Positions 5,712-30,285 are shown, counted from the whole stretch's first letter. The stretch is DNA of 63,291 bases, filler included, from Pelomyxa schiedti (GCA_020536535.1; 6 parts of 6 records of this genome joined end to end with filler, not necessarily neighbours in it); one strand, 5' to 3'. Notes: generated by a model not told the origin, from the letters alone. Translations and numbers: made by a program.

Positions 5712-7843
5712 CTACATGTCAGATACGCTCCACTTGTAGGCTTCTTCTTGAATGGCGACGGCGTGAGCTTTGGCTTCGAACAGTGTCTTCTCAAAGCCGT
5801 TGCTGCGGTCGACGCCATCCCATAAGTAATCCGGCTCGATGTTGAAGCGGTTGGGCTGCGGAGGTGGACCGCTGCGTGGGGGTAAAGGTAAGTCTAGGTG
5901 TAGGCTTTTGTTTTTTAGGGAAGGATCACTTGCCTGTATTTTGGTCTCATTGATTCGACTTTCTTTTTGGGTACGTGCTGCAGCATGGGATCGCCCCATC
6001 TGTCTTTCTCGCGCCGTTGCATATCCAGCGGAACATCGGTGAGGTATTGGGCAAAGGGTTTAGACTTCTCTTCAACTAGGCGCTGTGACATATCCATCTG
6101 AATACAGTTAGCGCCACCTGTTATTGGATGAATATTTGTTACCTGCTCTTGCTCCTGTACTTCGCCTTTACCCCATTTCTCGTTGTCTTCTTCTTTTTGT
6201 TTCATTTTGGCTTCCTGCCTTTGGAGTTCCTCTAAATATTCCAGCTTGCGTCCTATACTTCTTAGTATATAACTTAACTATTGTGAGGATAGGCACCATG
6301 TTTGTCTCTGAATACTGGCTCGTTTCCTTTTCCCAGTAGCGAGGGATCAACGTTGTTGAATTTGGATTCTTCTTCACGCTTCCTTTGGTCGTCCATAGCT
6401 CGAGCACTATTCTGAAATGAGTTGTAATTCAATGACTGATGCAGAGTCATACTCTTTGGAGGAAGTTAAACCGGCAGTAAAACCGCAGACAAGTTTAGCT
6501 TTTTGTTGAACAAGTGACGCGGAAGCAAACGCGGAAGCAGCTTTTTTTTGCATCAATTAGTTCACTTCATCAACAGGGAAGGAAATAGTAACCTGCAGAT
6601 GGGATTGGCATTTGGTCAGTTTTGGGTTCTGTTGCCGGAACATCCGGTTCTGCACCGATTTCAGGGGAGTCAAGTCTTGCCCCTCTTGGTGAGTCTTCAT
6701 CGCTTTCACTCTCAGCCGGCTCTGTATGTGGTTTCTTGCTCCTTGGTTCCTCCGTGGTGTGAGATTGAGAGACATCATTATTTCTCTTTCGGGGTAACTC
6801 AAGGTCATCTTCCCTCTTGGATGGGCGAGCTACATCAAGGTCGGTATCTCGTTGGCCGTGACGGGGTATGTCAAGGTCATCATCATCTCTTGGAATGGTC
6901 TTACTAGGGCGAGGCACATCAGAATCTTCAGTTCCACTGCGGTTCGAAGTACGGGGTATGTCAAGGTCGTCATCATCTCTTGGAATGATTTTACGAGGGC
7001 GAGGCACATCAATATCTTCGTCTTCTCTTTTAACTTTGGTATCACTTGAGTCAACAGAAACCCAACGTGAAGGAGTGTGGGCAGTAACTTTGCTTCGGTG
7101 AGTCTGAACTGCAATTGCTCTTTTGTCCTCGACAATCTGCGGCCGTTCGTCTGAGGAATGTGTTAAATGAAAAGGCAGAGATATGAGAAAAAAACATAAA
7201 ACACACCCTCAGGCTCACAGTCATCCAGTAACTCAATGGTTGTGGTGGCTGGTTTTTGTTTTGGAGTTGCCTTCACTTTTACATCCTCGTCAACAATGAC
7301 AAATTTCTGCTTCAAGTCAAACTTTCCTCTTCAAAGAACAAATAAAAAGAGAGTGTGGGATGTGAGATGTGAGAGGAAGAGCGTCCTGAACATAATTTGA
7401 GTGTGAAGAAATTTATTGTTGTTGGAGCAGGTGTTTTATTATAAACAAAATACTCATAAAATCTTAAAACATTAAGCAAAAAAGTTTGTTGCATAAAATT
7501 GTAAAACGAGAAACAAAAAAAAAAAAAAGAGTGAAGGTTTCTCATTACACACATTTGCGGTGCCAGATCCAGAGACATTCTTTTTCTTCTTTGTTTTTGC
7601 GTCGTGGGCCCTCGGCGCAGCCATGAAAGACGCCGACGACGTAGCGGACATGTACTTCTTCATCAAGTAGTCTCTGTTAGATGCTGCCGCCGCGGAAGAA
7701 GTTGGCGACGCCAGCGGTCGTTTTGCTGTTATGGGTTGTTTTTGGTGTTGCTGCTCCGACGTCGTGGGTTTCGATGTCCCATGAGTGGGTTTCGCTGGAG
7801 GTGCTCCTCGCGCAGACGACGGTAGACCCCGAGCGGCGTCCAT
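5712..7843 (-). CDS. BUD13: BUD13/CWC26 pre-mRNA retention and splicing (RES) complex subunit; multi-exon
   Basis: C-terminus PNRFNIEPDYLWDGVDRSNGFEK...AYKWSVSDM; N-terminal DYLMKKYMS; central DxDxPR repeats; WGDPM motif. Start could be 7882. Confidence 0.88.
6860..7025. repeat. Two ~90-nt-period tandem units inside BUD13 encoding DVPRPxKxIPRDDDDLDIPR
   Basis: cggggtatgtcaaggtc(a/g)tcatcatctcttggaatg...gggcgaggcacatc occurs twice. Confidence 0.85.
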
Positions 7844-7993
7844 CACTTCACAAAGATCTACAGTTGTAATGAAATTTTCCAAACGATGAAGGTGCCTGCT
7901 GAAGGTGATCCAAATGGCCTTTGAGCAGGCTGTTGTGGCTCACATGCCTACCCAGAACTATGTCCCTCGGGAGAAGCAAATCACAAGTTTTTG

Positions 7994-9154
7994 ATGAAAA
8001 TGCGGCGTTGTGACCAGGGCTTCGGGGCAGAAACGCCGCAGGCACGAAAACAACTTCTGGCGTTGATGATGGCATCCCACAATCGGTGTGGCGCTGCGAG
8101 CCCCGCGCGCCACTTCGTGTCCCTGCCCCAGCTCGCGACCGCGCCATTGTGGGACTGGTGCCTCCACGACTCCGAGATCGTTCTCGGCGCGGCCGTTGTC
8201 CTGCCCAATTCGGTCGGTTACTTCACGTTTGGAATCTCTTCGGCCTTGGGCAGTGTCAGCCGGGGAATCAGGTCATACAGCACGTGGAGAATTTCGCAGG
8301 TGCGCGGTTGCTCCGTCCTGACGTCATTCCTGCCCCATTGCTTGGTCGTGACGGAAGTGGGCAACACGCGAAGTCTGATGTCACTGAACCTGGCCACAAG
8401 ACAGCGCCGTTTGTTGGCCACAGAGGACAAATACAGGAAGAAAATCACTGGCTCTGCTGGGAATCACAAGTGGTGGCTGCGCTGCAACGGCGACGGCGTG
8501 TTGACTGTGGTGAGAATGACTGGTGTTGACGTCAGTAATGTGCACTGTGGCGGAATCTTCTGTCCTGATGATGGTACCCAGTGCGTTTTTATTTGCTTCA
8601 ACAAGTCACTTCCTGATGAAGCTGCCATTCTGGTTGTTCCTCCTTATGGAAGAAACAGCCCAGTAATCCTGGTTATCGATGTCAACCAGACATACAGCAG
8701 CAAGAACCTGACAGTATTGAGCAGCACAACTCTCATGTGTAACACTGTGCAGGCTTCCAGCATCACATCAGGCATCTCCATGATGAAATTCAATGGCCAG
8801 CGTGTTTTCTTTGTGGAGGCGGGGTTTTCAGACAAGGGCAAATATGTTCATGAAATCAATGAGTCTGGTACAATACAAAGGATTTCCCAAAACACCAAGG
8901 AACTGGCGCAGCTGAGTTACTCCCTCTTCTGCATCTCAAAGGGTGATGATCCCACCATTGAAATCTGGGACTGCAACAACACTGCTGCACCAATGAGGGT
9001 TCTCCCAGAATCGCACTTTGTGATTGCTGAATCGGGCTTCTTGTTCCACAACCACTGTAAGATCATTGATGTTACTGACTCCACTGGTTTTCGTGTTGCC
9101 ACTCTGACCTTTGCACGCGATGTGTCCGCTATTTTTGCCAATGCAATACTATGA
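7994..9154 (+). CDS. Lineage-specific family protein (paralog of 644-1927)
   Basis: Intronless 387-aa ORF sharing MASHNRCGAASPARHFVSLPxLATAPxWDWCLHDSEIV, NxKWW, PDEA and IEIWDCNNT motifs with 644-1927. Confidence 0.8.
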   Translation: MKMRRCDQGFGAETPQARKQLLALMMASHNRCGAASPARHFVSLPQLATAPLWDWCLHDSEIVLGAAVVLPNSVGYFTFGISSALGSVSRGIRSYSTWRISQVRGCSVLTSFLPHCLVVTEVGNTRSLMSLNLATRQRRLLATEDKYRKKITGSAGNHKWWLRCNGDGVLTVVRMTGVDVSNVHCGGIFCPDDGTQCVFICFNKSLPDEAAILVVPPYGRNSPVILVIDVNQTYSSKNLTVLSSTTLMCNTVQASSITSGISMMKFNGQRVFFVEAGFSDKGKYVHEINESGTIQRISQNTKELAQLSYSLFCISKGDDPTIEIWDCNNTAAPMRVLPESHFVIAESGFLFHNHCKIIDVTDSTGFRVATLTFARDVSAIFANAIL

Positions 9155-15378: not shown

Positions 15379-15804
15379 ATGTCGGCCACAACCGAACCGG
15401 AGAAAGCGCCCGATTTTGCGATCCCTGGTGTGAACCAACCACTGGACAAGACAAAACCACGACACATGGTACTTTAAATATGTTATATTGAAACCGACAT
15501 TTCTTTTAACTGGGGCCAATTTTATGTTGTGATTTGTTGGTGCAATAGGTCACAACGATTGTGCATGTATCATTCAAACTCGTACCTCTGATTTTGTACT
15601 TGTTCTTGTACCTTTTTGTCGACAACTTCATCATGGTATTTATCATTGTAACTATTCTCGTTGCCATGGACTTCTGGGCTACTAAGAATGTCACTGGGAG
15701 GCATGCGTCCTTGCATTTCAATTTGTTTGCTCATGAATTGTCAGGTTAATGGTCGGGCTGCGTTGGTGGAATGAAGTCAAAGCTGATGGGACAAGCGAGT
15801 GGAG
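15379..15804 (+). CDS. TVP23: Golgi membrane protein TVP23/FAM18, 5' part, allele A
   Basis: HVSFKLVPLILYLF...DFWATKNVTGR|LMVGLRWWNEVKADGTSEW matches TVP23. Confidence 0.88.
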
Positions 15805-15904
15805 NNNNNNNNNNNNNNNNNNNNNNNNNNNNNNNNNNNNNNNNNNNNNNNNNNNNNNNNNNNNNNNNNNNNNNNNNNNNNNNNNNNNNNNNNNNNNNNN
15901 NNNN

Positions 15905-18616
15905 GGTGTAATGGTGGTGATGTGGGTGGCGGTGGCGGTGGCGGTGGGTTGCAGGGGGCAGTGGCGAGTGGAGGGGGAGGGGCCGGCGCAGGGAGGGCCG
16001 TGGTGCTGCCGTGTGGCCATGACGTGTGTATGGGTTGCTGGAGGGCCATGCTGGCTGTAGCCAAGCTGCAGAACCTCCGCATGTTCACTGTACTTACTTG
16101 TTCTTTTTTTTTTTCCTTCTTCTTCTTCTTTTCTTTTTTTCGCTTTTTCTCCATTTACTGGTTTGTTTCCTTTGTTAAATTCGTTCTACACAGTACGGAG
16201 AGAGATATATCATGGGAAACCAAAGTTTGAATGTGAGGTGCAAGTGTGGGACAAAGATAACAGTACCACGTATTGTCCCTCCTCTGTTCATTTCCTTGCC
16301 TTGTTCTAACACTTTTTCCACTGACAGAGGGGCACAAAAGCTTAGTGAAAAAGAATCGCCATGTAAATGCTCTTGTAGATGCTCAAGTGCCGAATCAGGT
16401 ACTGTAAAAATGATTGATGGTGAATACTTACCAAAAGTAAAAGATGTATTGCATGCTACGATGGGATTGCGTTTCATCTCCTGCATTTGCTGAAAAACGG
16501 TGTCTTACCTGTCATGGAATGCTATTTTGTAACCACTGCTACGAGACACGGCACTCACCAGAGCGTCCTACACATCAGGTAAGACTGTGGTGTGCGTTTG
16601 TTTTTCCACAATAGTGAAGGAGGCTTTGCCTGTTGATGGCAGATCTGTTTGGCATATGATCAACACGTATTGCGTAATTCATCAATTACCAGAGACAGTA
16701 TTTTGCCAAAAATGTCGCATGTCAATATGTCCCCTGTGTGTTGGGGAAGATACTCACTCAAGACATCCTGTCAAGCCTCTTTCTGCAATGACAAATTCAT
16801 CTGGTACTTTATTTCTCTGATAAGTAACATCTCAACTATATTAAGATTCAGAATCCTTTCAAGGAAAACTTCAGAGTGTCGTGAATACTGAGGATTTTGT
16901 ATTGAGGGATGTACAGAACTCCCTACAGAAGGTTTGTAAATCGGCAGTGTTGGCGAATCTAATACTCTGAAATGCAACAGTTCCAAAATGTTGAAAAATT
17001 GAAGGAACTAATCAAAACCGAAAAATCTTCCTTGGAGGCACTTCATAGTCTGCATTTATTTGCAAAAACTTAATTTGACGTTTCTTAGAAATTCTAATGT
17101 GCCTGGTCAACCCAATGAAGTACAGAGAGCGTGTCAAAGTGTCTTTACCTTTGGAATCTGGAGTAAATCCAAAACCGTCTGTGCCGGCAAGACCAATTGA
17201 AATCTCCATTAGAAACATACCCCCTGAGCTGTAAGCTAACTTCTATCACCACGTTCCCTCATTTTTATAGAAATTTGAATTTAGACTCCAATCTCTCCCC
17301 AAAACATTACCTTTGGACCCTGGAGTTCCGGATATACGTATGAGTGGTGTTTCCCACACACTTTTTAATTTGGAATTTTCAATAGGGCTAAAGTTATTGC
17401 ATCTCAGCAGTAAATGGAGCCATCCCTATGGAATTGCTGTCCTAAGAAGTGGAGAAATTGTAGTTTCCAATTTTGGGAATAATGTGCTGTCTACTGTGAG
17501 TGTGTACCCTCCCCAATACGTCTGGGAACGCAACTCAAAGTGGTAGGGCGTCAAAATGCTGAAACTGCTGAATATGACTTGGGCATTGGCAATCTATTCA
17601 ATCGGCCCTTTGGGATTGCTCTACTTTCTGATGACACTTTGATTATATCTGATCAACGGAATCACTGCCTTAGATCTTATACGCAAGGTAGATTGAGTCA
17701 GGAGACTACATTTTCTTCCTCTAATGAAAAAGCAGGGGAGCCTGTGATTGTTCTCGCTGGAAGGCCAGGAACCGCCGGTTTTGCAGATGGATCAGGATAC
17801 AAGGCATTATTCAACTTCCCGATGGGAATATGTGTCTTTGAAGATAGCATTTTCGTTGCAGACATGTACAATCACCGTATTCGTAAAGTAACCCGCACAG
17901 GTGACGTCATCAGCACAATAGCCTTTTTTTCATTCTGTACAGGAATTGTATCCACAGTTGCCGGGTCCCCGTTACCAGGCAGCAAAGATGGACCATATGC
18001 GGAAGCTCGATTTTGTGAGCCTACTTGTATATGTGCCGGCGGTTCACCTGGCTCATTCTTCGTTGGGCAGAGCGGCAGTGTAAGAAAGCTCGGTAGACCA
18101 TACATTTATTGCTATTTCACCGCGCACTCATTGCTAATAGAAGACAATAGCGTGAGCACTCTTGCACTGTTTGACCGCAAGGCCACCAGTACTTTGCTAG
18201 CTATGCCCAGTTTTATTCCCTCTCTATGCTACGAACCACAAACCCGAACTCTGGTTGTTTCCGACAGGGACAACCACCAAGTGTGGAAGCTTTCCTTATC
18301 AGGTACACTTACACACTTTCCCATTCCGCACACACCCCGGCAAAATCCGCTCGCCGTTCACCCAAACCCAAACATAAAACAAACAACACTACACACCAAC
18401 CAACACGCCGCCACTGCGTCGGTTACAGTTGACATATTGATATTTACCTCCACAACAACAAACAAAACAGAGAGAATGAAAATGACCAAGCAAGTGGGGA
18501 TTCTTCCAGAGAATACATTCCGGCCGGGTGCCGTTGCACTCCACGGCACCTCCCTCCTCATCACCTCTGTCGACTCCCACAGCCTCCTCGAGTTCCCCAA
18601 CTGGAACCAGCCCTAG
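15905..18616 (+). CDS. TRIM-like protein: RING (5'-truncated), B-box, B-box, NHL repeats; multi-exon
   Basis: VVLPCGHDVCMGCW...VRCKCG...KNRHVNALVD (RING); KRCLTCHGMLFCNHCYETRH (B-box 1); YCVIHQLPETVFCQKCRMSICPLCVGEDTHSRHPV (B-box 2); FNRPFGIAL, FNFPMGICV..VADMYNHRIRKV (NHL). Confidence 0.8.
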
Positions 18617-21968: not shown

Positions 21969-23194
21969 TCAACTGCCCCAAGGAAAGTCCGTATTTCTTT
22001 CTTCTTTGGACTCTCCATGGCTGGTTATTTTGAAGACGAGCTGACGTGTTCCTGTTGAGGCATCTATGATGGTCAACTCCCACTGTTGGATTGTGTTGCT
22101 TGTGGAATTATTGGTGCAGATACCAATTAAGTTGTCGTCGAGTGTTATCAACTGGCTTGTGGGTGGCATGTTGTCGAGGGTGAAGCATGGCTTGTTGAGG
22201 TTGTTTGGGTGGAAGAACTGTGTGGTGAATGTCTTGGAATTCTCTGCGATCAGAAGGGTATGGCTGAGTGCCTGGAGTTTCCAATTGGGTGGGAACGTGA
22301 GCTCACGTCGTTGCGTTGCTGTGTTGAAGAGGATGTCATGTGGAACACTGTGGATGCTGTAGACTGGGTCACAAGTAAGGTAATCCATGCAGTATGAGAA
22401 CGGAACGCGGAAGGACTTGGTGGTCACGAGAAGCTGCTCGGGATATCCACGTACCATACAGTTTTGCTTTTTTTGGTTTGGCTGAATGCGAGAAGGATGT
22501 CTGGGTTAGCTGAGGAAAGCAGAAACATTGAAAAGCGAGTAACGAAAGGGATAAACGCTTCAGGGTGAACGGGCTCGCCATTCACCACCCTCCACACATG
22601 CATCCCCATCATATCGCCGGAAGAAGCAACGATCCAGTGGGTGTTGCCGAGGTGCTCGAAGATGTCATTCCGCGAATGTGAATACAGAGGCCTCCGGACA
22701 GCAACCGAGCCTCTGCTCGCTCCAGAAGAGGGTTCCATGAGCTTCTTCTGGGTGCAGCACCCGCTCGGGTACCTGCACTCCACAACATGCAAGTCCCAGA
22801 GGTCCTGGATAGCACCTTGGATCCCAGTGAGAGCCAAGAACCTCCCGTTTCCCAGGGGCCCGCACAGCGCGAACCACGGCCACTCGGGGCTGGGGCTCCT
22901 CGCCCCCACGAGCTTCACCACCCCCTGCGTGTGCGACATCACGGCGAACAGGCACATGGAGGGCATGGAGTGCAGGCCGTAGCGGTACAGCGCCTCCTGG
23001 TACTCTTCGGGCCAGTCCCTAACCACCCCGGAGCCGAACACGCAGGTATCCAGTTGCAGAGCAACCTCCGTGTGCCTGGACACCACCCAATCCCGCCCGA
23101 ACTGCGCCAACACATTATGGGGCAGCACCCCAACCCAGCAGCAACCACCACCACGACGACGAGGGGGATGAGGACAATTGGGCCGCTGTGATGT

Positions 23195-23229
<35 letters not shown>

Positions 23230-23608
23230 GCCGTTGTTGTTTTTGTGGCGGTGGTGGTTGCGGGTGCTGGGGCCCCGCCTTGTCCTTGCTGTTGTTGCTG
23301 CTGCCTGGGGGTTGTGGCGGTGTTGGTGGGGAGGCATTTGCTCCTGTTGTTGCAGCCGGAGTGGTGGTCGCAGCGGCGGGGCGGCGCCCGCGCCCACGCC
23401 CACCACGCGGCCGGCGGCGTCGCCGGTGTTGTTGTTTCTCCTCCCCTGTGAGTATGGCCCCGTGCTGCTGCTGCTGCGGTTGCGGTTGCGGTTGCGGTGG
23501 GGGGTGCAGGAGGAAGGAGCCGCCGGCGGCGAGGGCGAGGAACTGGTCGGCGGCCCATAGGCCCCACTCCAGCGTAACCGACACGCCACCCTCCCTGACC
23601 GTGTCCAT
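21969..23608 (-). CDS. 'AADQFLAL' family protein with polyQ; apparent 1-nt frameshift near 22425 (possible pseudogene)
   Basis: ORF 22424-23608 (WAADQFLALAAG, QFGRDWVV, GNTHWIV) overlaps ORF 21969-22457 in another frame with no obvious intron. Confidence 0.6.
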
Positions 23609-24055: not shown

Positions 24056-27000
24056 ATGAGGAGACTTGTAGTTTCGTGTGGCGACGGTGGTGATTTCACG
24101 TCACTGTCTGATGCCGTAGCAAAGGCCCCCCCTGATTCCACTATCATTGTATGCCCTTGGTTTATATTAGCCACTACTATATACAAAACACACCATGGTT
24201 CGGTCTTATGTTTTGTAGAACTCGTGTTTGTGGAAGTATTACTGTAATACTAAATGAAACAATTAGGTGATGGCTGGAACATATGAGGAGAAGAATACAC
24301 CCATCCTTATCAACAAGCCCCTCACGATTTGTTTGTCCTCAATATCACAGATGTCCACCTCCTCTGCGACGTCACAAGCAACTTCTGACCCAACTGCATC
24401 CAATGCTGTGATCACTCCTTTTGTGGTTAAACCGTATGATCCTATAAGTTGCGATTGGCCTGAGGTTAATATACACAGACAATTTCCTTTGTTGAAGGAG
24501 AGTAGACCATCCACAAGAGATCTACGTTCTGGTGCACTACGACCTTCATCTTCTCAGCCTTCTTCTCTCGGAGGGAAGATGACTGACTTGGAGCCAACAG
24601 ATTCTGTGCTGGTGTCAGTGTCGGAGTTCCCAATTCAAGTATGTTTTGACTTAGCATTTGTAACTAACTATAAGACGCTGATTATATTGTTGCAGCTCCC
24701 AGTGGAAAAGTTTAAATTCAAATTGGAAGATAACGAATTGCCACCAATAGACAGAGTTTTGCAGGAGACCTGGATAGTTTCCAACACCTCGTCTACCAAA
24801 CAGAAAGTTCTTTTCGTCAATGACTGCAATGATAAATACGACCTGAGATTCACCCCCGAATCGAGAACTATCCTTCAGGTTTTTTGGTCCTTTGTTTGAT
24901 AACTTCTGGTCTAAATTCCTGCAAGGGACAAAGAGCGGCTGTAACAGTAACTCTTAACATCAAGTGCACAACATTGATCCGTAGGAACATTCCGGTTATT
25001 GTGAAAGGTATGACAAAAACTGCTGGTGAGCACTACTTTTAACCCTTCCTTGCAGGGGAGGATAACCAATATCGTCACATCTATGTCTCACTCTGCTTGA
25101 ATTCTCAAATAAGTACAAAAGTGGATTTTGATGAAGTTGCTCTCAATCAGCCACCAATTGAGGAGGATGACCTCGCTGCTGCTTACAGTGCAAGATGGAG
25201 GTCTTTGCAGGTAAATACTGTAACTGATATTTGGAGATGATATGAACATAAACCAGGTCTCTGTTAAGAAAATGAAACTTCAAGATCCTGACCAAATTCA
25301 ATTGCGTGAGTTAATGCGCACAGTTGAACTCCTGGAACAGCTTCAATTTACTTCAATACAAAGTTTTCTCTTGTTTACTATCCAAAACAGTCATTGATAT
25401 ATTCAAGAGTTCCTTGGAGCGTCTCTAGTCCCAGGCAGTATTGCTCTCCTCTTTGAGCACACTGGCCAGGGTTCTTTGGAATCAATAATGAAGTCTAAGA
25501 ACATCCCTTCCACTTTCAAGATGAGAGTTGTTTGTGATATCGCCTATGGTAAACCTTCCTAGTAACTTTCTTTTCTCCTCACTTTGTCCAGGAATGGAGT
25601 TTCTGCACAAACACGGTGTTGTGCATCACAAACTATCACCAAGTGCTGTTCTTATTATGTCTACTGACCCCTTTGCCTCGTCAGTTGCTAAGCTGAGGTT
25701 TTACCTCTCCAATATCACCAATGTAACTAAAATCCCCTGAGTGATTTTGGATTCCCCCGCCGAGATAATGATGAACAGCCGGGATATGCTGTTGATGGTA
25801 TCCTTCTTTCCTGTTTCTCCCTCACTTACTTTTTGCAGTTCGGACAATATCCAATTTCCTTCTTGATTCAAACTCTCTTTTGTTGCCTTAACTTGTTGTT
25901 TTATAAGTCTACACAGCCCCCGAGCTTTTTAGTGACAGATCACATTTTGAGTTTCCATCTGATGTTTATAGGTAGGTCAAAAGAAACATGGTTCTTCACT
26001 CTCACATATTCCCAGCTTTGCTATGGTACTTTATTTCCTATATAAAGGGAAACACCCCTTTGACACACCGGAATTTGACTCTGAAACTGGTATTAAAAGT
26101 TGGAAATAGAACTCTACTTTACTAACTTCTGGAGCGGTGGAGCAATTCTTGAAAGCAGGCAAGGTTTGTCTCCTTTAGTCTTGGGACAACTACCCTGATG
26201 TTTTTCGCAGAGACTGCCTATCGATTTTGAATGCAAGCCAGTTATCAGGGATTTGATTACAACATGTTGGGCTAATAATCCAACTGGCAGACCAGGTACC
26301 ATTGAAACTACATAAAAGGAGAAATGAATAAACAGCACAAAGATTTTCCAACGATTGTGAACAAACTTCAAGACGAGGTGTCAACATTGGGTGTCTCATA
26401 TACCCAATCAACAACACGGCGTGATAACAAAGTCCTTGTGGTATCCAACTGCAATGTGACGATAAAAGGTTATTTAGCCGTAATTTTCTGGCTTATGAAT
26501 ATAATTCCAGGATTGGAGTTCAGAGCACCTGTGGCTGTCTCTGATGGGGGATCACTATCGATGGACCAATGCTCACTGCCCTCGGTTTCTGCTTCCGGGA
26601 AAGGTTCCTCACTATCTCTCTTCCAGTGTGAGATCGACCCCACGAAATATGGTATGGATGCCCCTTATCCGGTTTGCTTACAACTTTCAAGGAGGAAAGT
26701 CTGAAATATCATCTGTGCGATTTGTTGATTACTCCAAAGGATCTCTTGAACTCTGCAGTATTTACCCAGAACGCGGAGGTCTTATCGGGTTTTAACAATT
26801 TATAGATATCTCAGCCAGTAGTGCATCTGGAACTGGAGTGGAAGTTGGTGGTTTTGCAGAACCCGTCCTTCGATCATGTTCAATCAGATATGGGCAAGTT
26901 GGTTTATCTTTTTGGAAGAATGGTGGAGGCATGTATGTTTTGGTCTGTCTCTATTAACAGGCAATAACATTGAATCAGAATCGATCAATGCTTTATCAGT

Positions 27001-30000
27001 GATTGTGGTCTGGCGGGAGTGGAAGTCGCCTGTGGAAGTAATCCAACACTTAAATCTTCTTGTATCAGTGGTTCTCGGGGGGTGGGCATCCTGGCACACA
27101 CCAATGCTGTAGTTTCAGTGGAATCTTGCAACTTGTTTGACAACGCTTATGAAGGGATAGAGGTTTTTCATCCACAAGTTGACTTTTTCTCATTGGGGAA
27201 AGGTGAAAGGCTCCAGCACAGCAGTTCTCAAGTGTTCCTATATTCACCATAATACTCGATCTGGCATTTGTCTACGATCCTCAAAAGCTGACATTTCAGA
27301 CACCCATATTTATGAGGTTGCTGCTCCTTTGGACAGCACTTTTTCCCTAAATCTCTCAAGAACGAAATTGCAGGGATCAGAAGTTTGAATTCCACCTTCA
27401 GTGCCAAGAACTGCTGTATACAGAAGAACAAGTACCCAGGCTTAGTTATAATGCGGGAATCTGTGTGCAATGTCTCCAACTGTTTAATTCGTGATGGAAA
27501 CCAAGCAGGGTATGCCTTTTTTGTAGATCTTCTCTTATGTATATACTCAGAATTTTCTTTTGCCAAAACGGTCATGGTACAATTGAAAATAGCACAGTAC
27601 AGAATAATTCTCTTGCTGGGATTGAGATATCCATGGAATCTGACCCTGAGCTTAAAAACTGCATTATTGAAGCAAACCGCTATGGCCTCCATTATAGGGA
27701 AAAGGGTGCGTGTAAGTGTGAGCCTTTCAAATATTAACTTCACCTAGGAAATGGACGTGTGGAATGGTGCACCATACAAAACAGTGTATCATCCAATATA
27801 AGAGTAATTGAAGATAGTGAACCAACAGTTAGGCACTGCAGAATTCTTAGGGCTGGTGGAGTTGGAGTGAGAGTGGCTGGGTGCGGCTCAGGATTTTTAC
27901 TGGAGCAGTGTGACATTGCCGCAAGTGGTGGCTGTAATGTAGATGTTTATGGTGAGTGCTCCCCCACTTTGAGGGGGTGCCATCTCAGAGGTGGTGGCGA
28001 GAGCGGAGTGAGATTTGATAAAAATGCGAGTGGTATTGTCGAGTTGTGCTCGATATATGGAAATGCACTTGAAGGCATTTGTGTACGCAGTGAATCAAGT
28101 CCAATCATTCGGAGGTGCAACATATCCAAGGGGATGCAGGTGTGCAACTCACTCTTACCCAATCTTATACTCCACAGAGTGGTATTTTGCTCAATTCATG
28201 TGGGCCTTCAACTGTAATTGACAACTGTGATATATTTTCTAACACAACGACTGGTATTGAGTTGACCAACACGAGGTAGGCAACGACCATTATTTTTTTC
28301 CCAACTGAACTCTTCTGCAGTGCGCCCATAATTCGTGGGTGTACTATTCATGCATGCCAGTATTCTGGCATTCAGTACCTTGACATGTCTGGTGGCTCTC
28401 TGTTGGAATGCAAGATCCATTCCAATGGGACAAACATTGGGCCAAGACCGGGTTTTTAAATCTTCTTCCTTGGGTTTTATCTAAGTCTTTCCTAGCCATT
28501 GAGTACTCCAGCAAAGTGGGCCCCACGATCAAGAACTGCATTATTGATGGGGAACCAGTGACTTCCACAACACCAAAGCATCCATCGGATGATGAGGACA
28601 GTGTTACTGGCACAAGGTCGAAATATGGTATTGCAACGCAAGTTGTCTTCACCACAGAAGAAATTGCCGCTGCAACAGACAACTTTAACGATTCACAAGT
28701 CCTGGGCTCAGGTTGATCCAAAACAGTTGTACTCGGGGAAAACTAACACTACCAAGGCTCGTATGGATCGGTCTACAGAGGGGTCATTAATGGCACCCCC
28801 GTTGCAGTCAAAGTGATGCACCAGACTCTAAAAGCAGGAGTGAGGAAAGGTTTTGAATATGAAGTGGAGCTTCTGAGAACTTTCAGGTAACTCCCTGCAA
28901 CACTGAGAGAGTCCAATTCACTCCCACGCAGGCACCGGAACCTTGTGCCACTACTTGGGTGCTGTATGGATCCTCTTGCTCTTGTTTATGATCTCTTAGA
29001 GGGGGGCACTCTGAAATCACTGATAAAACAAGCCCGAAGAGCGTGGGAACGTGGTTAGTCCTCACTTTTTTCCGCTTTCCCAGCTCACACACTGCAGAAA
29101 AAGCGGATATTTTCCCCTGGAAACAACGCCTCAATATAGCCATAGGATGTGCCAGAGGGCTCCTCTTCTTACACGCCACCAGCAAGCCTCCTGGTACTCG
29201 TTCTTTCAAAGTGCAAAATTTAACATTCACACCATTTTGACAGTGATTCACAGAGACTTCAAGGTATAAATTCTCTATTTCACAATTCTACTCTTAACCC
29301 TACATTTCAGAGCGATAATGTAAGGGCGATTCTCGATTTGAGATTAGTTACTTTTAAACGATGGTAATGAGATTGCAGGTATTACTAGATAGATATCGTG
29401 AACCTAAAATTGGAGATTTTGGTAACATCATCTGCAAAGTCAGGATTCTATTAACTTTGAACAGGGCTTGCGAGATTACTTCCCAAAGATATCAATACTG
29501 GTTCTTCAGCTGGCACACCAGGCTATGTGCGTAATTCAAATTGTCACTGCCATTTCATTTCTCACCACATCATTAGATTTGTCCGGAATATGATACCAAC
29601 GGCACATTGACCACCAAGGTCCCTCATATTTCCCCTTATGTCTTCCTTTTCAAACCTTTTACAAGGTTGATGTGTACAGTTTCGGTGTTGTGTTACTCGA
29701 GCTTCTTACCGGTATCCCAAAAACCACAACCAAAGCCCTTGTACTCACCACCGCGGCCTAGGAATGCCAGCCATAATACGCGTTACAGTGTCTTCGGAGG
29801 ATGAAGATTCCACAGACACAAGAAGTAAAAAGCATAAGCGGCACAAGCACAAAGAGGTGCTACTCGGAGAGTGGGTATCAGAAAGAATCCGAATATCCCC
29901 GCATAGGTTCCAACAATAACAATAACAACTATCCACTGACTGCACTCCACCAAAGGTCATCGGACCACCCCCTGCAAGACATTGTCCACCCAACCTGGCC

Positions 30001-30285
30001 TCCTGAGGTATCTTCCTTAAATCCCTATAAAAACCGCACCAGGACAACACACAACCCACAACAACGACCCATAATCGCCACCACGCCGCCGCCGCCGCTC
30101 ATAAACCATACTTACTACTGTGCACTCAGATCGCGATCAACGTGTGTAACATTGCGGGGCAGTGCATCGTGGAGGAGCAGGCCAAGAGGCTCGCAATGAA
30201 CGACGTGCTGGCCCAGCTCGAGGCCGTCGAGGTCGTCGGCAACGACGTGGGTACCCTCGATCCCAGTGGAAACGGTGACGACTGA
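24056..30285 (+). CDS. Multidomain protein: beta-helix N-cap, Ig-like domain, pseudokinase, right-handed beta-helix repeats, RLK/Pelle(IRAK)-like kinase; many introns
   Basis: SLSDAVAKAPPDSTII|VMAGTYEE..INKPLTI; KVDFDEVAL...SVKK...VVHHKLSPSAVLI...SDFG; parallel beta-helix repeats (NIYGNALEGICVRSESSPIIRRCNI-type); VFTTEEIAAATDNFNDSQVLGSGSYGSVYRG, VAVK, HRDFKSDN, IGDFGLAR, GTPGY, DVYSFGVVLLELLTG. The single-gene join is inferred. Confidence 0.72.

Follow-up and report, generated by a model that had tools for sequence, protein, structure and literature searches.

An intron-rich Pelomyxa schiedti gene encoding a putative soluble protein with a split beta-helix, an inserted ASH-pseudokinase module and an RLK/Pelle/IRAK-like kinase

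The window analyzed here is a stretch of 63,291 nucleotides, filler included, from the 52.4 Mb genome of Pelomyxa schiedti (Archamoebae; GCA_020536535.1), and its positions 24056 to 30285 are occupied by one intron-rich gene whose product carries, in this order, a beta-helix cap, a linker, an ASH domain, a first kinase fold (K1), the beta-helix body and a second, C-terminal kinase (K2) (Table 1; all positions are counted from the first letter of the window). The stretch is eukaryotic in character, with open reading frames (ORFs) that are short and broken and a GC content of about 42%, and 7.43 introns per gene have been reported for P. schiedti (PMC8887013). The sequence strings quoted in the initial annotation, which had been made from the DNA alone, were all found in the window where it had placed them.

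The exon structure was derived from the sequencing runs matching the stretch, namely three single-cell RNA runs and one DNA run of a single study. The longest spliced RNA contig (X1, 3,393 nt) begins at 25404, probably already at about 25357, reaches past 30130 and has 31 introns spliced out, and the locus is further represented by one RNA contig of 1,959 nt and several short ones, compared over 24100-30099. The 15 RNA joints listed, to which 13 further joints are added, skip 38-115 nt each and have GT..AG ends. The remaining introns were found by enumeration constrained to the record coordinates of the RNA contig, an unconstrained splice-site Viterbi search having been dropped because it over-called introns within exons that are contiguous in RNA. 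Exactly 370 nt of intron are needed between 25592 and 26651 under the RNA constraint, and the sole kinase-consistent intron set for this interval adds a 42-nt intron at 26469-26510; the gap at 27160-27359 has a single splicing solution. The resulting model matches 13 of the 13 record coordinates of X1. A recoded stop was considered for the in-frame TGA at 25395-25397 and rejected, since a canonical 45-nt intron (25363-25407) removes the triplet. At 27117 (A>G), 27824 (A>G) and 27869 (G>A), one-letter differences between RNA contigs and genome were seen in one or two runs each and may be alleles, errors or editing.

A search of the representative library with the longest exon (130 aa) retrieved an NCBI protein of 1,440 aa from the same 18,705-nt contig (P0001), identical to our model except for a missing 15-aa linker segment and the three residues derived from the 8-nt micro-exon. 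The former difference stems from the extra 45-nt GT..AG intron that NCBI places at 24434-24478, a region without RNA cover; with this optional intron spliced out, the coding region of our model yields 1,443 aa. The full-length database, fold and complex results given below rest on P0001, which lacks both segments, and the joined gene model was compared by local scripts with the paralog loci only. When the kinase exons were searched one at a time against Pfam and the PDB, they fell in the right order along the profile, with scores too weak to classify them. The product name "AAA family ATPase" given by NCBI to P0001 and to its paralog P0006 (KAH3765956.1) is a misannotation, as neither an AAA domain nor any other P-loop family was found in P0001 by the Pfam scan (E ≤ 0.001).

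Table 1. Features of the gene and its surroundings, in window positions.
Feature	Position	Strand	Residues	Details and basis
Whole coding region	24056..30285	+	1,458 aa	38 exons, 37 introns (median 45 nt); ATG at 24056, stop codon ends at 30285
Putative beta-helix N-terminal cap/first rung	24056..24332	+	1-53	Split by 118-nt intron 24149-24266
Ser/Thr/Pro-rich linker	24333..24620	+	54-149	96 residues, low complexity; candidate 45-nt GT..AG intron 24434-24478
Predicted ASH/PapD-like/MSP-type Ig domain	24621..25111	+	150-262	AlphaFold2 (AF2) fold and Foldseek
K1, putative TKL-type pseudokinase	25133..26395	+	270-536	VAIK-Lys, DFG and APE kept
K1 catalytic-loop equivalent HHKLSPSA	25624..25647	+		No Asp, no Asn; replaces HRDxxxxN
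8-nt micro-exon	25839..25846	+		Letters in RNA contig between joints 25797/25906
U12-type intron	25847..25906	+		ATATCC donor, CCTTAAC branch site, AA end; RNA joint and sequence
Beta-helix body, PbH1/CASH-type repeats	26405..28545	+	540-1096	Pfam PF13229
K2, RLK/Pelle/IRAK-like kinase	28639..30249	+	1128-1447	All catalytic motifs intact
9-nt micro-exon	29311..29319	+		Codes SDN of the K2 catalytic loop HRDFKSDN; RNA contigs X1, X2
Last intron, U12-like	30008..30129	+		GTATCTT...AA, not GT-AG; three RNA contigs ending at 30007 resume at 30130
394-aa ORF	22424-23608	-		GC-rich island (0.60 vs ~0.42 around), directly upstream of the kinase gene
358-aa ORF, upstream neighbor	17540-18616	+		NHL repeats, 58 bits
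Weak RING-like match	15799-16230	+		18 bits, below cut-off; 1.3 kb upstream of the NHL ORF

The unity of the gene is carried by one spliced RNA contig that spans K1, the beta-helix and K2, so that the single transcript assumed by the initial annotation is seen in spliced RNA over the 3' three quarters of the gene. Moreover, every domain junction lies within a single exon: cap-linker-ASH in 24267-24638, ASH-K1 in 25056-25210, K1-helix in 26343-26468 and helix-K2 in 28496-28711. The NCBI model, made independently, likewise puts all domains into one gene. That annotation had wrongly joined two or more neighboring genes (cap-ASH-K1 and helix-K2), or that the contig is chimeric, might be argued from the lack of RNA cover over 24100-25356 and from the template-switch oligo with which X1 starts at about 25404, inside K1. 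This is nevertheless extremely improbable, given the RNA contig that crosses all three domains, the single exons that bridge the cap-ASH and ASH-K1 junctions as well, the DNA contig from the source run that is unbroken over 24100-29575, and the domain order, which is the same at four loci located on as many contigs. In addition, a transcript with its 5' end at 25404 would cut into a kinase fold halfway. Directly after the oligo, X1 has two letters that fit the upstream exon across the canonical intron 25363-25407. Contamination by bacterial or plant DNA was likewise considered and rejected, because introns of 38-50 nt, of the Pelomyxa type, connect the exons of the helix with those of K2 in one RNA contig.

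Three further loci of the P. schiedti genome (contigs C858, C579 and C179) are colinear with the whole gene model and form with it a four-member family of 35-67% identity, depending on the domain. Cap exons were detected at two of these three loci, with the cap-splitting intron at the same place, and the C179 locus is annotated as P0006, the Pfam architecture of which is the same as that of P0001. A Logan contig from run SRR23919873 (L023) is a spliced transcript of the K2 region of the C579 paralog, with 99-100% identity exon by exon to positions 6769-8228 of that locus (L014), so at least two members of the family are expressed.

The body of the beta-helix was recognized on P0001 by PF13229 with 231 bits in five stretches (cut-off 25.9), and three single helix exons exceed this cut-off on their own (31-64 bits). 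With a helix exon, 1,847 relatives were found at E ≤ 0.001 in a representative library of 1.84 billion proteins, and the best 150 of them were characterized. Apart from P0001 and P0006, these 150 are uninterrupted ORFs, mostly metagenomic, with two named clusters (Nostocales and Blastocatellia); a few are labeled as bacterial 'right-handed parallel beta-helix repeat-containing protein' and many, from metagenomes, as 'F-box protein 11'. Fusion partners of the helix among the scanned matches are an N-terminal Ser/Thr kinase, a caspase domain and a TIR domain.

The cap string SLSDAVAKA...AGTYEE...KPLTI corresponds to aa 16-52 of the protein. In 45 of the relatives, mostly metagenome-derived and prokaryote-like, the segment aligned with the cap (aa 3-52) precedes the first detectable repeat by a median distance of 53 residues (range 1-127), whereas the gap between cap and body is 450 residues in P0001 and 441 residues in P0006; on this comparison, about 400 residues have been inserted after the first rung of the helix. 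According to the prediction, the detached cap packs against the helix body: when residues 1-58 of P0001 were docked to its residues 506-1095, the interface score (ipSAE) was 0.70, compared to 0.00 for the best of three controls. Of 78 solved complexes, 51 attain this mark, as do 2 of 108 mismatched pairs; for eukaryotes the figures are 39 of 65 for solved pairs and 2 of 126 for unrelated ones. At least 58% of the contacts agreed between runs, the partners had pLDDT values (predicted local distance difference test) of at least 83, and the predicted interface sets cap residues 32-54 against body residues 513-544 in parallel register, i.e., against the first rungs after the insert. The split helix read from the DNA by the initial annotation is thus backed both by its homology with relatives in which the helix is contiguous and by the predicted docking, which also supports the packing of the N-cap for which structure prediction had been suggested. 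One might still regard the first 53 residues as a vestige of a fusion or rearrangement that does not pack on the helix, which would then not be functionally 'split', considering that the evidence for packing is a prediction and that the cap is followed by a low-complexity linker of 96 residues. We regard this as very unlikely, as the cap is kept at 40-70% identity in the paralogs while the linker is not conserved, the cap still matches bacterial caps, and the in-register, rung-on-rung contact falls at the exact N-terminal end of the body with the docking score of 0.70 against 0.00 in the controls.

Carbohydrate-active enzymes are numerous among the Beta_helix families, PF13229/CASH proteins included. 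The helix might accordingly be an enzyme (glycan lyase, hydrolase or epimerase) that couples polysaccharide processing to phosphorylation and not a recognition scaffold, a possibility to which the enzymes among these families and weak Pfam matches to Pect-lyase_RHGA_epim and NosD would lend some weight. It is distinctly improbable, however, since the protein appears soluble and has no signal peptide, whereas most such enzymes work extracellularly, since the closest relatives join the helix to kinase, TIR and caspase domains and not to carbohydrate-binding modules, and since at E 0.001 no sequence relative was found among solved enzymes.

Within the insert, aa 150-262 are predicted to form a seven-strand beta-sandwich of the ASH/PapD-like/MSP type. 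The match to PF22544 (HYDIN/CFA65 Ig) reached 16.2 bits, below the cut-off of 25.5, and an atlas feature score of 0.86 served as a lead only. The AF2 model, computed from a four-row alignment, shows seven strands (pLDDT 76.6, pTM 0.68), and Foldseek placed the PapD-like domain of HYDIN first (E 1.6e-5), followed by the ASH domains of OCRL1 and CEP192 and the MSP domain of VAP, in a total of 32 matches at E ≤ 0.001. The domain is followed by K1, the fold of which is closest in the PDB to Roco4, RIPK1, CTR1 and MLK1 (88-74 bits); a word-indexed search with K1 alone returned one weak match. IEEDDLAAAY stands where the Gly loop of K1 would be expected (25157-25186), the DFG motif is retained at 25696-25754, interrupted by an intron, and the catalytic Asp is missing in all four paralogs, the loops of which read HHKLSPVT or HRNLKPTN in the other members. 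The decay of K1 seems graded, because P0006 retains GxGxxG together with HRNLKPTN. The absence of the catalytic Asp throughout the family argues that K1 is a pseudokinase, in line with the reading made of the single copy in the window.

The arrangement of an ASH domain and a kinase is not confined to this family. Among 376 fetched proteins, the ASH profile picked only P0153 (P. schiedti), P0154 and P0155, in each of which the domain lies directly upstream of a kinase, and these three are the nearest neighbors of K1 in both kinase trees described below. Of the three, P0153 and P0155 possess both a signal peptide and a transmembrane helix. The same layout as in P0153 is found in a further P. schiedti transmembrane receptor kinase (L022, G000:C327:1-5634), which comprises a Cys-rich/EGF-like ectodomain, a transmembrane helix, a cytoplasmic ASH-like domain with a weak Ig_CFAP65 match, and a kinase. 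Judging from these sequences, ASH-K1 corresponds to the cassette on the cytoplasmic side of amoebal transmembrane receptor kinases; the resemblance of the Ig-kinase module to amoebal transmembrane kinases, proposed initially from Entamoeba, holds for Pelomyxa's own P0153 and L022 and for P0155. In a search of the P. schiedti genome, the ASH-kinase arrangement with an intact Gly loop was also found on contigs C730 and C1164. At these two paralogous loci (L020, G000:C730:6000-15999, minus strand; L021, G000:C1164:9000-14835), the stand-alone cassette is immediately preceded on its strand by ORFs that encode an [FeFe]-hydrogenase large subunit, 4Fe-4S domains and a CysJ-like FAD-binding domain. 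They could be hydrogenase-flavoprotein-kinase fusions or merely conserved neighbors, and in L021 an assembly gap (N) separates the hydrogenase-side ORFs from the cassette.

K2 is apparently an active kinase of the RLK/Pelle/IRAK type. It carries the preamble FTTEEIAAATDNF at 28648-28686, and the GSGSYG loop, VAVK, the alpha-C Glu, HRDFKSDN, DFG and PE are all present, the active-kinase motifs being complete in the window copy and in all four paralogs. In the PDB, the first 27 distinct sequences matched by K2 are plant receptor-like kinases (RLKs) or receptor-like cytoplasmic kinases (RLCKs) with 164-127 bits, headed by BRI1, FERONIA, SYMRK and BAK1 (164-157 bits); IRAK1 (125 bits) and IRAK4 (119 bits) come next, ahead of the first other TKL, CTR1 (112 bits). 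The alignments begin at residue 3-10 and so cover the preamble. The best 120 of 4,021 database matches are nearly all land-plant RLKs or RLCKs with 36-50% identity. In kinase-core trees that include Raf-like, LRRK/ROCO-like, oomycete and amoebal TKLs, the K2 domains of both P0001 and P0006 cluster with the plant RLKs at SH-aLRT values of 99 (134 rows) and 100 (48 rows), whereas K1 stays outside the RLK clade in both trees, and there is no close kinship between K1 and K2. The RLK/Pelle-like character initially assigned to K2 was hence recovered by the PDB and database rankings, and in the trees K2 groups with plant RLKs and not with the generic TKLs sampled. A derivation of K1 and K2 from a bacterial kinase-helix-kinase-helix protein such as P0005 was rejected, both being of eukaryotic TKL types. 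P0005 itself (2,127 aa, NCBI, 3.1-Mb contig, presumed bacterial) shows the order kinase, beta-helix, kinase, beta-helix and is a tandem duplication of a kinase-helix unit.

The origin of K2 deserves separate consideration. Dictyostelium has no IRAK orthologs (PMC1420674), the five IRAK-class kinases of Phytophthora infestans are all predicted to be inactive (PMC3019232), and a eukaryote-wide kinome tree infers an IRAK4-type kinase in the last eukaryotic common ancestor (bioRxiv 10.1101/2020.01.27.920793). K2 might thus be a recent transfer of a land-plant RLK/RLCK domain instead of a member of an old amoebozoan IRAK/RLK-type lineage: both trees draw it among the sampled plant RLKs, beside ALE2/PBL/PBS1 types, its best non-family match in the P. 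schiedti genome is a generic MLK/Eph-type TKL, and orthologs are missing in Dictyostelium as mentioned. We nonetheless consider such a transfer unlikely. Although K2 is drawn inside the plant sample, no starred branch forces this nesting, and plant monophyly excluding K2 was not rejected by the AU (approximately unbiased) test (p-AU 0.465, 48 rows); the plant sample had, moreover, been picked by similarity to K2. The identity of K2 to plant kinases is only 36-50%, the K2 region has Pelomyxa-type short introns, a micro-exon and a U12-like intron, and an IRAK4-type kinase is already inferred for the last eukaryotic common ancestor.

No signal peptide or transmembrane segment was found in the protein, in which the only hydrophobic segment is a kinase core helix; the protein is accordingly predicted to be soluble and cytoplasmic, consistent with the location initially suggested. 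We propose that it was assembled from three sources, namely a prokaryote-like helix, an ASH-TKL cassette and an RLK/Pelle/IRAK-type kinase, with ASH-K1 looped out right after the first rung and suspended at one end of the helix. The helix would present a surface for recognition or scaffolding, with a protein or a glycan as ligand, much as in FBXO11; such a role would also fit the effector domains carried by the bacterial relatives. ASH-K1 would serve in docking or allosteric control, perhaps as a decoy of the cytoplasmic part of a receptor kinase, and K2 would be the phosphorylating output, switched on either when ligand binding or oligomerization along the helix brings K2s together or when a K1-K2 contact is released; the four paralogs would be diversified copies of such a sensor. 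In our judgment the structural and evolutionary description of the protein is very probably correct, the sensor mechanism is tentative and may well prove wrong, and the three-source soluble protein together with the proposed mechanism is, as a whole, moderately favored as the best explanation.

Several points weigh against this explanation. The docking score is the model's own confidence and may mirror a likeness to ordinary contiguous beta-helices, which are abundant in the PDB; that likeness is, on the other hand, precisely what the split-helix claim needs. A PDB sequence search with the helix body found no related solved structure at E 0.001. For its bacterial affinity, the evidence consists of the two named clusters and of prokaryote-like single-ORF metagenome proteins, and the kinase trees were built without animal IRAK/Pelle, oomycete IRAK or Entamoeba TMK sequences. 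At the level of the transcript, the RNA contigs leave the 5' quarter of the gene (24100-25356) uncovered, and with the template-switch oligo of X1 located inside K1 a shorter transcript or isoform may start near 25404.

All four building blocks of the protein are known, and their combination is undescribed: the full architecture was found outside Pelomyxa in none of the best 150 of the 1,847 helix relatives, and such proteins are unmentioned in either Archamoebae genome paper, which agrees with the initial impression of an unfamiliar architecture. The protein offers a clean natural case of a large two-domain insertion into a beta-solenoid just after its cap and would inform on the insertion tolerance of solenoids. 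Furthermore, it places an apparently active RLK/IRAK-type kinase in Amoebozoa, the group in which Dictyostelium has no IRAK orthologs, and K2 thereby bears on the age and spread of a kinase family used in plant and animal innate immunity; ASH-K1, for its part, suggests that the cytoplasmic cassette of a receptor kinase can be re-used as a pseudokinase module. That the family represents an amoebozoan cytosolic immune-type receptor kinase, in which the helix, of a subtype coupled in bacteria to TIR, caspase and kinase effectors, recognizes a pattern or ligand, ASH-K1 acts as integrated decoy or regulator after the manner of plant tandem-kinase resistance proteins and K2 gives the IRAK/RLK-type output, is a speculative and rather unlikely idea, which would find its setting in a bacterivorous amoeba that houses prokaryotic endosymbionts. 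If true, IRAK/RLK kinases would have been recruited to non-self sensing a third time, in an assembly of independent origin.

The gene also contains unusual introns and micro-exons. The reading frame is restored only with the 8-nt micro-exon, which the NCBI model skips and which is flanked on both sides by non-GT-AG introns, the U12-type intron downstream and, upstream, the intron 25798-25838 (GTATCCTT...AG), which is probably of the minor-spliceosome type as well. For the 9-nt micro-exon, AGCGATAAT is present between 29263 and 29379 in RNA contigs X1 and X2. Small nuclear RNA genes for U12 (58.2 bits against a cut-off of 53) and U6atac (62.7 bits against a cut-off of 33) are present in the genome, at G000:C475:61363-61517 and G000:C841:53279-53397. 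Because the genome paper lists only GT-AG, GC-AG and one GT-GG intron boundaries (PMC8887013), U12-type introns appear to be unreported so far in Pelomyxa. Upstream of the gene, the ORF with NHL repeats and the RING-like match before it may belong to a TRIM-NHL-like E3 ligase gene, and the 394-aa ORF had no Pfam match.

In comparison with known systems, K2 shares with plant RLKs and RLCKs and with animal IRAK/Pelle kinases the kinase domain and the F-x-x-E-I-x-x-A-T-x-N-F preamble (BRI1, FERONIA, BAK1, SYMRK, BIK1, IRAK1, IRAK4), and is likewise of the RD type with all catalytic motifs. However, the Pelomyxa protein has neither the ectodomain and transmembrane segment of RLKs nor the death domain of IRAK/Pelle, and whereas RLCKs are small and stand alone, K2 ends a helix-pseudokinase assembly of 1,100 residues in an amoebozoan. 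Plant tandem kinase proteins (WTK/Rpg1) and JAKs likewise join one dead and one live kinase fold in one soluble polypeptide, the dead domain regulating the output or serving as a decoy. In contrast to these, K1 and K2 are not adjacent but separated by a helix of 557 residues, and while both domains of the plant tandem kinases derive from RLKs, K1 is not of the RLK type and not a recent duplicate of K2; the FERM or SH2 domain expected of a JAK-like protein was not found in P0001 by the Pfam scan.

With regard to the helix, the prokaryote-like kinase-, TIR- and caspase-helix fusions have the same helix subtype (31-38% identity) and the same cap motif, but their cap continues directly into the helix, their kinase, of bacterial type, stands at the N-terminus, and their ORFs are uninterrupted, with neither an ASH domain nor a C-terminal RLK-like kinase. 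FBXO11, the CASH beta-helix of which is a cytoplasmic substrate receptor for protein recognition, also has a cytoplasmic PbH1/CASH-type helix, and its label is carried by many metagenome relatives of the Pelomyxa helix; the F-box and UBR zinc finger that flank the CASH helices of FBXO11 were both absent from P0001 in the Pfam scan. Finally, amoebal transmembrane receptor kinases (P0153, L022, P0155) have the ASH domain directly upstream of a TKL kinase, as in ASH-K1, and the stand-alone cassettes L020 and L021 keep the intact Gly loop that K1 does not. Whereas the receptor kinases possess a signal peptide, an ectodomain and a transmembrane helix, the cassette described here sits inside the beta-helix of a protein predicted to be soluble, with the catalytic residues of K1 apparently lost.

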